The notes beneath the pieces are model-generated. The model was not told the origin of the DNA. It worked only from the letters and a program-made list of their open reading frames with translations, and made no database searches. A stretch of DNA of 26,872 nt from Macrostomum lignano (Eukaryota), in the NCBI GenBank assembly GCA_002269645.1, contig NIVC01000388.1:1-26872 (forward strand). Direction: 5' to 3'. The stretch's first letter is position 1; each line of letters starts with the position of its first letter. The position numbers and the translations under genes are program-made. Below, one piece after another: positions 3,969 through 14,480 of the stretch.

Positions 3969-4054
3969 ATACAAATTTGGAGTCATTACTAGCTACTACA
4001 AGCCAATTCATTATTAATGGTCATTTAACAACTATTATTGATTCTTATGATCAG
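3969..4054 (+). CDS. Macro-Deltex gene, most 5' exon found
   Basis: Acceptor aattttag, donor CAG/gtaaga. Open frame (D)[28 protein letters not shown] joins the next exon in phase 0. Confidence 0.6.
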
Positions 4055-13000: not shown

Positions 13001-14480
13001 TTGTGTTATTTTTGACTAGTAGCACTTACGGTTGCGATTTTATAGAGTACTGTGCCACATCCGGTTGTGTTATTTTTGACTAGTAGCACTTCCGGTTGCG
13101 ATTTTATAGAGTGCCACTGTGCCACATCCGGTTGTGTTATTTTTGACTAGTAGCACTTGCGGTTGCGATTTTATAGAGTACTGTGCCACATCCGGTTGCG
13201 TTATTTTTTGACTAGTAGCACTTCCGGTTGCAATTTTATAAACTACTGGACCACTTCCGGTTGCGTTGGTTTAGAGTTGTAGCACTATAAACGACTGTCA
13301 TTTACTAGTATTAGAGTCTATACGTATTGTGCCACTTCCGGTTGAGGTATTTCCGAATTGATTGTGCCTGTGTGGTATTCAAAGAACGGTTTATTAGCAC
13401 TGGCACTTCCGGTCTAAACGTTGTCAGAGTTATGTAATTTCCTTCGTCTTTTTACAGGTTACGATCGCTCTAACGGCACCATAGTCATCAAGTACTCCTT
13501 TCCCAGCGGAACCATGGAGGGAGTGCAGTACAAGGGCATCAGCAGGGAGGCCTATTTTCCCAACAACGAAGAGGGCAGAGGCATTGTACAGCGCCTGCGG
13601 GCTGCCTTCAATGGTCGAATCGTATTCCAGGTGGGCCAGTCGGCGACCACCGGAAATAACATGGCAATCACGTGGAACACCCTGCACCACAAGACCAAGA
13701 TTAATGGCGGACCTCCCAAGTAAGTGTTTGATTTTTCTGTGTCAGGTTGGGTCGGGTTGGAGAAAACTAGGTCAATCTGCGTCAAGTTGGGTCAGTTTAG
13801 GTCAGGTTAGGATAAGTTTGGGTCAATCTAGGTCGGATCAAGTTAGGTCAAATTAGGTCAATTTTAGATCGATTTGGGTCAATATGGGATCATTTAGGTC
13901 AAGTTGGGTCAATGTAGGTCACGTTGGGTCAATTTGGGTTGATTTTGGTCAGTTTGGTTTTAGCAGGTCAATTTAGGTCAGTTTAGGTCAAGTTGGGATC
14001 GGTTTGGGTTAAGTGGGTCAGTTTGGGTCAAGTTGGGTCAATTTAGGTCAAGTTGGGTCAGTTTGGGTCAATTTGGGTCAGTTTGGGTCAAGTTGGGTCA
14101 AGAGGGTCAGTTTGGATCAGTTTGGGTCAGTTTGGGTCAAGTTGGGTCAGTTGGGTCAAATTGGGTCAAGTGTTAGGTCAGTTTGGGTCAAGTTGGGTCA
14201 ATTGGGTCAGTTTGGGTCCAGTTGGGTCAAATTGGGTCAAGTGTTAGGTCAGTTTGGGTCAAGTTGGGTCAATTGGGTCAGTTTGGGTCAAGTTGGGTCA
14301 ATTGGGTCAGTTTGGGTCAAGTTGGGTCAGATTCGAATAAATAGGCCAGGTCAGTTCTGAGTCCATGACTGTCAAACAAAATTGATTATTTCTCTACTCT
14401 ACGCATCCCGCAGCCACGGCTACCCGGACAGCGGCTATCTGAGCCGAATCAGCGACGAGCTGTCCGCACTAGGCTACTGA
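3969..14480 (+). CDS. Macrodomain-RING-Deltex C-terminal (DTC) protein; DTX3L-like E3 ubiquitin ligase with a fused macrodomain (5'-partial, 7 exons)
   Basis: Exons 3969-4054, 4153-4452, 5084-5664, 10481-10827, 11308-11706, 13458-13719, 14414-14480. All introns are GT-AG with matching phases (0, 0, 2, 1, 1, 2). The exons total 2042 nt, plus 1 nt owed by an upstream exon, giving 680 codons and a TGA with no internal stop. Deltex motifs: [57 protein letters not shown]. Confidence 0.87.
4153..4452 (+). CDS. Macro-Deltex gene exon: KH-like segment and poly-Q
   Basis: Acceptor cttttag, donor CCA/gtgagt, 300 nt open frame containing [20 protein letters not shown]...[19 protein letters not shown]. 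Confidence 0.8.
4472..5053 (+). repeat. (CTGT)n microsatellite, imperfect, intronic
   Basis: About 580 bp of CTGT with CTAT, CTGC and GT variants. Confidence 0.97.
5084..5664 (+). CDS. Macro-Deltex gene exon: P/Q/A linker and N-terminal half of the macrodomain
   Basis: Acceptor ttttttttgccccgcag. Encodes LRVDLSDLT...[22 protein letters not shown]...FGDTY...KILFIALP, matching the macro pattern GDIT / D-xIVNAAN / GGGVA / GxA / vIHavxP. Donor CG/gttggt in phase 2 is weak but matches the next exon. Confidence 0.83.
5657..5869 (+). repeat. 34-bp tandem array, left part (about 6 diverged units)
   Basis: Unit AG(AG/AT)CTTCCGGTTGGTTGGxxTTTGAGGGGAATT. The first unit overlaps the exon end and the splice donor at 5665. 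Confidence 0.92.
5870..8742 (+). pseudogene. LINE ORF: APE-type endonuclease and reverse transcriptase, disrupted
   Basis: Endonuclease: [35 protein letters not shown]: [61 protein letters not shown]. In-frame TAG at 7347-7349 and frame changes near 6700, 7470, 7830 and 8560. Confidence 0.92.
8781..9415 (-). mobile_element. 3' fragment of an I-group (I/Nimb/Ingi-like) LINE: partial RNase H, CCHC knuckle, CA/CAA-rich tail
   Basis: The minus strand encodes [11 protein letters not shown]...[11 protein letters not shown] (RNase H) and LAQLRSGH...CPDCGE...HWFLCP (C-terminal Cys-His motif). It ends [13 protein letters not shown]-stop, then a short UTR and ACAAACACACACAACAACAAAA. Confidence 0.85.
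9445..10324 (+). repeat. 34-bp tandem array, right part (about 26 near-identical units)
   Basis: Head-to-tail AGATCTTCCGGTTGGTTGGTGTTTGAGGGGAATT with no spacers. Confidence 0.98.
10481..10827 (+). CDS. Macro-Deltex gene exon: C-terminal half of the macrodomain
   Basis: Acceptor C9-tccaaag. Encodes [27 protein letters not shown]...[13 protein letters not shown]...LRLHVCC, matching the macro helix / SIAFPxxG / helix / strand pattern. Donor C/gtgaga in phase 1. Confidence 0.83.
10887..11292 (+). repeat. 15-bp pyrimidine-rich minisatellite, intronic
   Basis: Unit CTCTACCCTCCC(C/T)TT, about 27 units, degenerate toward the acceptor. Confidence 0.95.
11308..11706 (+). CDS. Macro-Deltex gene exon: acidic linker, RING finger, start of DTC
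   Basis: Acceptor tttccag. Encodes CAIC...C...CSEC...CVLC (11481-11624), then GNQPPNGTM from 11649. Donor G/gtgagc. Confidence 0.9.
11805..13270 (+). repeat. 64-67-bp dimeric minisatellite, intronic (about 22 units)
   Basis: Unit GACTAGTAGCACTTCCGGTTGCGATTTTATAGAGTGCCACTGTGCCACATCCGGTTGTGTTATTTTT; shorter variants have AGACAACTGT or AGACTACTGT. Confidence 0.97.
13458..13719 (+). CDS. Macro-Deltex gene exon: DTC core
   Basis: Acceptor ctttttacag. Encodes [18 protein letters not shown]...[11 protein letters not shown]...[17 protein letters not shown]...[14 protein letters not shown]. Donor AA/gtaagt. Confidence 0.95.
13745..14330 (+). repeat. 9-10-bp degenerate tandem repeat (TTGGGTCA-based), intronic
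   Basis: Mixed TTGGGTCAAG, TTGGGTCAGT, TTGGGTCAA and TTAGGTCA units. Confidence 0.93.
14414..14480 (+). CDS. Macro-Deltex gene terminal exon: end of DTC
   Basis: Acceptor catcccgcag, phase 2. Encodes (N)[21 protein letters not shown]-stop, the typical Deltex C-terminus. Confidence 0.95.

Follow-up and report, generated by a model that had tools for sequence, protein, structure and literature searches.

Does one flatworm gene place a macrodomain and a Deltex-type RING-DTC module in a single protein, and would that protein both recognise ADP-ribose and attach ubiquitin to it? The window analysed here is the complete contig NIVC01000388.1 (26,872 bp) of the free-living flatworm Macrostomum lignano (assembly GCA_002269645.1), and the gene in question is BOX15_Mlig011146g1, which has eight coding exons on the forward strand (3180–14480; coding sequence of 2214 nt, 737 amino acids (aa)). 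An initial annotation of the sequence had proposed such a fusion of reader and writer. The locus probably encodes a 737-aa Deltex-family, DTX3L-like E3 ligase with a highly divergent macro-fold module, an atypical RING and a canonical DTC domain; the proposed reader function found no support in the sequence.

The fusion depends on the exon structure. The seven phase-compatible exons initially proposed for positions 3969–14480 were rebuilt, each with an AG acceptor and a GT donor, and their splicing gave 2042 nt, i.e., 679 codons plus TGA, with compatible phases and no internal stops; the product is identical to the corresponding residues of GenBank PAA84102.1 and UniProt A0A1I8JAE9. The exons of that interval therefore stand, but the start of the gene does not, as the first coding exon lies further upstream (3180–3351). 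The gene is built as follows.

3180–3351, forward strand: coding exon 0, with ATG at 3180 and GT donor at 3352, present in A0A1I8JAE9 and outside the interval initially annotated; it runs from Met1 to the first base of codon 58 and encodes the N-terminal region MFSFVVEF...VFMRTK.
3969–4054, forward strand: coding exon 1, with AG/GT borders, in frame and matching A0A1I8JAE9.
4153–4452, forward strand: coding exon 2, with AG/GT borders and in frame; the start of the GenBank coding sequence (4189) is inside it.
5084–5664, forward strand: coding exon 3, a Pro/Ala/Gln-rich linker that leads into the N-terminal half of the macro-like domain (5357–5664), with the motifs SDLT (D286) and VIVPSN...EFGLAKAV in the half with Foldseek macrodomain matches.
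5665–10480, forward strand: intron 3, 4816 bp, which splits the macro-like domain.
10481–10827, forward strand: coding exon 4, which completes the macro-like domain with its C-terminal half (10481–10751) and continues into a linker.
11308–11706, forward strand: coding exon 5, an acidic linker, the atypical RING (11481–11624) and the start of the DTC domain (from 11646).
13458–13719, forward strand: coding exon 6, the DTC core including WNTLHHKT (H705; 13685–13696).
14414–14480, forward strand: coding exon 7, the DTC C-terminus HGYPD...SDELSALGY (H717, E731) and the TGA stop.

The positions of the three domains agree with those first proposed (the DTC domain ending at 14477), as does the intron of about 4.8 kb within the macro region. 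The order in the protein is an N-terminal unclassified region, a low-complexity linker, the macro-like domain (residues ~278–470), an acidic linker, the RING (554–601) and the DTC domain (~609–737). Residues 1–167 had no Pfam or PDB sequence match at E ≤ 10.

Public gene models agree with this structure. GenBank calls the gene at 4189–14480 on the forward strand with DTC as the only recorded Pfam family, and its product PAA84102.1 (639 aa, BOX15_Mlig011146g1, marked 'partial') is identical to the spliced product from 'QPSEML' onward. UniProt A0A1I8JAE9 (737 aa, 'E3 ubiquitin-protein ligase') is 100% identical to the product and adds the exon at 3180–3351. The assembly was annotated with a genome-guided RNA-seq transcriptome (StringTie/TACO plus de novo assembly) whose transcripts were split at sites of spliced-leader trans-splicing and polyadenylation (PMC5730564), and the macro-like and RING-DTC exons thus share one transcript model. 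The single-chain fusion of the two parts is real, resting on this transcript-derived annotation, which answers indirectly whether the exons are joined in one mRNA. The GenBank start at 4189 is directly 3' of TTGCAG inside exon 2, and the first Met afterwards is at 4201 (Met103). The position of this annotated start suggests that TTGCAG may be a spliced-leader trans-splice acceptor, and that an alternative product of 635 aa, beginning at Met103 and lacking the N-terminal exons, may be made. A further UniProt entry, A0A1I8INU6 (142 aa, 'AAA_8 domain-containing protein'; window 4153–4500), is an intron-retention model that runs from exons 1–2 into the (CTGT)n of intron 2, and its name looks unrelated to its sequence.

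The protein has a paralog, A0A1I8GDN0, which is 35% identical over the full length, shows the same domain order and keeps both the macro-like domain and the exon 0 region. In the gene model of A0A1I8GDN0, 32 residues are missing from the centre of the macro-like domain and the sequence after GGPEG is non-homologous, probably because an exon was missed and the model reads on into the final intron.

The DTC domain carries the family assignment. It matched Pfam PF18102 with E = 3.8e-39 (score 134.3 bits, curated cut-off 25) at profile positions 2–132 of 133, and its catalytic residues are kept. The best PDB match was human DTX3L (3pg6, 2e-29), followed by DTX2 and DTX1 (down to 2e-23). His582, His594 and Glu608 of DTX2 correspond to H705, H717 and E731 with the same spacing (+12, +26), and the roles of His582 and Glu608 as a catalytic His-Glu pair have been described (PMC7615817); His594 is the ADP-ribose-binding His. 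The motif HGYPD has His as in DTX1/2/4, where human DTX3L has Tyr (YGYPD). Judged by these similarities, the identity of the DTC domain is beyond doubt and membership of the Deltex family is established. Membership of the DTX3L subfamily is not established from the same comparisons: RRM and KH-like domains (D1–D3 of DTX3L) were undetected by Pfam in the flatworm protein, the motif is HGYPD and not YGYPD, and the best PDB match is the only indication of DTX3L.

Upstream of the DTC domain, positions 11481–11624 encode the pattern C-x2-C-x13-H-C-x7-C-x2-C-x14-C-x2-C (C554, C557, H571/C572, C580, C583, C598, C601). In an alignment with eight Deltex RING-DTC proteins, seven of the eight canonical zinc ligands, all of them Cys, are kept, and the His directly before the third Cys (FHC; H571) is conserved in both flatworm paralogs.

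For the macro-like module, the favourable evidence comes from predicted structures. An AlphaFold2 model of the domain, made from a two-sequence alignment, had a predicted template modelling score of 0.62 and a mean predicted local distance difference test score (pLDDT) of 58. Foldseek compared this model with the PDB and gave 39 matches at E ≤ 1e-3, and the top 50 were essentially all macrodomains or macroH2A fusion carriers. The best match was macro 2 of PARP14 (3q71; E = 1.1e-5, 19–20% identity), and others included macroH2A1/2 (1yd9, 6fy5), macro 2 and macro 1 of PARP9, macro 3 of PARP14, YmdB and alphavirus macrodomains. Macrodomains were again the top Foldseek matches of a full-length model made without an alignment (pLDDT 40). 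A forced global hhalign alignment, which is itself non-significant, placed the motifs in canonical order against E. coli YmdB, as listed here with the flatworm module named first.

SDLT against GDIT.
ADLVIVPSN against VDVIVNAAN.
EFGLAKAV against GGGVDGAI.
ILFIALP against VVHTVGP.
Between the VVHTVGP row and the next row, the YmdB side reads VAFPAISTGVYGYP.
LRLHVCC against QVYFVCY.

The Asp of the GDIT-like motif (D286), the second Asn of the NAAN motif (N304) and the Pro of loop 2 are kept. In known macrodomains, the Asp of the GDIT motif contacts adenine. We accept a macro fold (three-layer alpha/beta/alpha) with moderate confidence, as a predicted fold only.

A number of results for both the RING and the macro-like module weigh against this reading of the protein. 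In the RING, the canonical C-x-H histidine, which is the fourth ligand, is gone and an insertion (CDSAGTQLC) stands in its place, and Pfam zf-RING_2 reached only E = 0.37, below significance. The RING first proposed is thus kept in seven of its ligands and lost in its fourth; we regard it as atypical, and on the aligned residues its second zinc site is uncertain. For the macro-like module, the Pfam Macro profile matched neither the spliced protein (E ≤ 1) nor the isolated domain and its paralog (E ≤ 10), an outcome that the initial annotation had itself set against its macrodomain call; the call survives as a predicted fold in two AlphaFold models. A two-sequence profile of the region found no PDB macrodomain (E ≤ 10), and a phmmer search with it among 1.84 billion representative proteins yielded, apart from the protein itself, nothing but its paralog A0A1I8GDN0 (E = 1e-11) and a repeat protein that was judged spurious. 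The hhalign comparison with a YmdB-family profile was not significant (probability 9% local and 1% global), the profile being a narrow one of 19 bacterial loci whose members are 55–100% identical to YmdB. As a positive control, E. coli YmdB matched 99 distinct PDB macrodomain sequences. The AlphaFold2 models are of low-to-moderate confidence (pLDDT 58 and 40), and of five models of the domain just one had a pLDDT above 50. In the forced, non-significant alignment, both ADP-ribose loops are degenerate: three of the four glycines of loop 1 are replaced (LEFGLAKAV against GGGGVDGAI), as is the GxxG of loop 2 (GNNLPLWG against STGVYGYP). Set beside the canonical motifs, EFGLA takes the place of GGGxx and GNNLPLW that of sTGvyGyP.

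Selection was examined with a second genomic copy of the locus (NIVC01000764.1), which is collinear with the window at 97–98% identity, including the upstream retroelement and a long interspersed nuclear element (LINE) in intron 3. Comparison of the two copies over 737 codons gave 17 synonymous and 12 nonsynonymous differences and a ratio of nonsynonymous to synonymous rates (dN/dS) of 0.23, and the exon indels between them (6, 3 and 12 bases) all keep the reading frame. At the amino-acid level the macro-like domain is unchanged, and exon 0 has two synonymous and no nonsynonymous differences. The gene is under purifying selection. The low dN/dS, the intact frames, the unchanged macro-like domain and its retention in the paralog together indicate a functional gene with a constrained macro-like module.

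If the fold is that of a macrodomain, the module could be a fully functional ADP-ribose reader, making the protein a self-contained reader and writer. The fold assignment from the predicted models, the retained GDIT-like Asp, second NAAN Asn and loop-2 Pro, the strong constraint between the genomic copies and the precedent of a macrodomain in DTX3L relatives all speak for such a reader, but loop 1 has lost three of its four glycines, loop 2 its GxxG, and no known binder shows significant similarity. Small changes in the loops can abolish ADP-ribose binding by a macro fold, as macroH2A1.2 and macroH2A2 show. We consider a fully functional reader doubtful. The MacroD-type Asn and Asp are also replaced in the forced, non-significant alignment, and with the phosphate-binding glycine loops replaced as well, hydrolase activity is unlikely and ADP-ribose binding cannot be assumed. 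To judge from these motifs, the module is probably not a hydrolase and may bind ADP-ribose weakly, differently or not at all; the reader role first proposed finds no sequence support, the binding loops being degenerate.

It is also conceivable, although we think it unlikely, that the module was repurposed in macrostomid flatworms for another ligand, such as the hybrid mark of ubiquitin and ADP-ribose, nucleic acid that carries ADP-ribose, or a partner protein. Were this so, the protein would be a self-contained variant of PARP9-DTX3L and a living example of the state of DTX3L before PARP9.

A further explanation denies the macrodomain altogether, taking the module as an unrelated, lineage-specific alpha/beta domain that AlphaFold, given a near-empty alignment, forced into a Rossmann-like three-layer fold. 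The failure of every sequence and profile search, the mean pLDDT of 58 with four of five models below 50, and template modelling scores of only 0.44–0.55 are all consistent with it; against it, the top Foldseek matches of both models are macrodomains. We hold this explanation to be improbable. The reading of the locus as a duplicate in decay, disrupted by inserted transposons and satellites and with a long spliced frame that is a computational artefact, is highly improbable: a LINE and four tandem arrays lie in the introns, the assembly is highly redundant (PMC5730564) and the GenBank coding sequence is marked partial, but the frame is intact in both copies with indels in multiples of three and a dN/dS of 0.23, the gene model derives from transcripts and all DTC catalytic residues are present, and the pseudogene reading was rejected on the dN/dS and the frame-preserving indels.

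For a Deltex-family ligase with a divergent macro-fold module, the RING would recruit E2~ubiquitin, and the DTC domain would hold the ADP-ribose moiety while His705 and Glu731 would activate the 3'-hydroxyl for ubiquitin transfer, as in DTX2 and DTX3L. The macro-fold module would most likely serve substrate or partner recognition, acting in cis where the macrodomains of tetrapod PARP9 act in trans. The role in innate immunity suggested at first is hypothetical.

Repeats and a retrotransposon occupy intron 3, and repeats lie in other introns as well, as listed here.

5657–5869 and 9444–10326: two arrays of a 34-bp satellite (Tandem Repeats Finder; consensus TAGATCTTCCGGTTGGTTGGTGTTTGAGGGGAAT) that flank the intronic LINE on both sides.
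5827–8885, forward strand: LINE-type retrotransposon in intron 3, degenerate and frameshifted, with endonuclease and reverse transcriptase across three frames.
About 5827–6708: LINE endonuclease (Pfam Exo_endo_phos, 1e-10).
About 7460–8885: LINE reverse transcriptase (Pfam RVT_1, 1e-14 and 2e-9).
11805–13286: a 67-bp satellite of about 22 copies (92% identity) that fills intron 5.

The first 34-bp unit extends over the final 8 bases of exon 3 and contributes the GT donor at 5665, so the splice donor of exon 3 lies within satellite sequence. Read-through of exon 3 into the satellite was considered and rejected; the junction 5664/10481 restores the macro-like fold and agrees with both databases. 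The second genomic copy carries the same intron 3 insertion (97% identity). The 67-bp satellite has the core CTTCCGGTTG in common with the 34-bp satellite, and the version in the second copy has a period of 64 bp (86–88% identity). Tandem Repeats Finder also reported (CTGT)n in intron 2, a 15-bp repeat and a ~20-bp repeat in the remaining introns. These intronic repeats give rise to long spurious open reading frames (ORFs), and the satellites and the dead LINE fill the large introns without disrupting the gene. At 8872–9400, minus-strand ORFs resemble an RNase H/zinc-knuckle LINE tail, possibly from a second, inverted fragment; the minus-strand ORF in this interval had no Pfam match.

Two further features flank the gene.

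1–2300: fragment of a long terminal repeat (LTR) retrotransposon pol gene (RVT_1 2e-20, integrase rve 5e-13, Integrase_H2C2), in several frames.
19603–26872, forward strand: multi-exon cadherin gene with Pfam Cadherin repeats, running off the contig end.

The pol fragment is cut short by the 5' end of the contig and recurs upstream of the second gene copy, and the cadherin gene likewise adjoins that copy downstream. At 16100–16980, a tandem repeat carries ORFs of 200–280 aa on both strands (GGRPCLLVGAPVSWW..., RQGRPPRDRGAHQETGAPTK...) and is probably non-coding low-complexity sequence.

To place the protein among known systems, homologs and published accounts were searched. Low-complexity words dominated the word-indexed search with the whole protein, which found no match but the protein itself, and the RING-DTC and DTC-alignment searches gave only proteins of ≤262 aa, which are uninformative on Macro+DTC combinations elsewhere. 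Neither Perina et al. 2014 nor a preprint on zebrafish interferon-stimulated genes reported Macro-Deltex fusions, and no neighbouring genes were shown for a Haliotis DTX3L-like gene. A 2026 preprint describes non-tetrapod relatives of DTX3L with a macrodomain, DTX3L having carried one until PARP9 emerged (10.64898/2026.04.23.720386), so the fused architecture is already described in outline. The novelty first suggested is accordingly narrowed: the gene model is public in GenBank and UniProt, and what remains new is the unusual RING and a macro fold with degenerate loops that had escaped detection. As the public Pfam annotation lists DTC alone, the fold is a small annotation gain. The locus offers an invertebrate case of macro-type and RING-DTC ubiquitin/ADP-ribose modules in one chain and is in line with a recently proposed transfer to PARP9 of a macrodomain function that DTX3L once carried in cis. 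It is no new class of system, and would provide a compact construct for asking whether a macrodomain in cis directs the ubiquitylation of ADP-ribose.

In tetrapods, DTX3L (RRM, KH-like domains and RING-DTC) pairs with PARP9, which has two macrodomains. With DTX3L and its macrodomain-bearing non-tetrapod relatives, the flatworm protein has in common a C-terminal RING followed by DTC, a non-WWE N-terminal part and 3pg6 as the best DTC match, whereas it differs from DTX3L in the His of HGYPD, the RING without the canonical His ligand and a macro module beyond profile detection. PARP14 macro 2/3 and macroH2A, among the top Foldseek matches, are like the flatworm domain without MacroD-type catalytic residues, but the identity to PARP14 macro 2 and macroH2A is 12–20% with no significant sequence similarity, and loops 1 and 2 are off the binder consensus. 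The PARP9-DTX3L heterodimer of tetrapods likewise combines macrodomains with a RING-DTC ubiquitin/ADP-ribose module, and both macrodomains of PARP9, macro 2 and macro 1, rank among the closest structural matches to the predicted flatworm model; in contrast, the flatworm protein is a single polypeptide with one macro-like domain instead of two, degenerate ADP-ribose loops and no PARP catalytic-like domain. In DTX1, DTX2 and DTX4 (WWE-WWE-RING-DTC), WWE readers of ADP-ribose are in cis to RING-DTC and His582, His594 and Glu608 are identical, but the flatworm protein, which had no Pfam WWE match, has a macro-like fold in place of the tandem WWE. By this analogy, the flatworm protein may be compared to a cis version of PARP9-DTX3L, in an arrangement analogous to that of DTX1/2/4.

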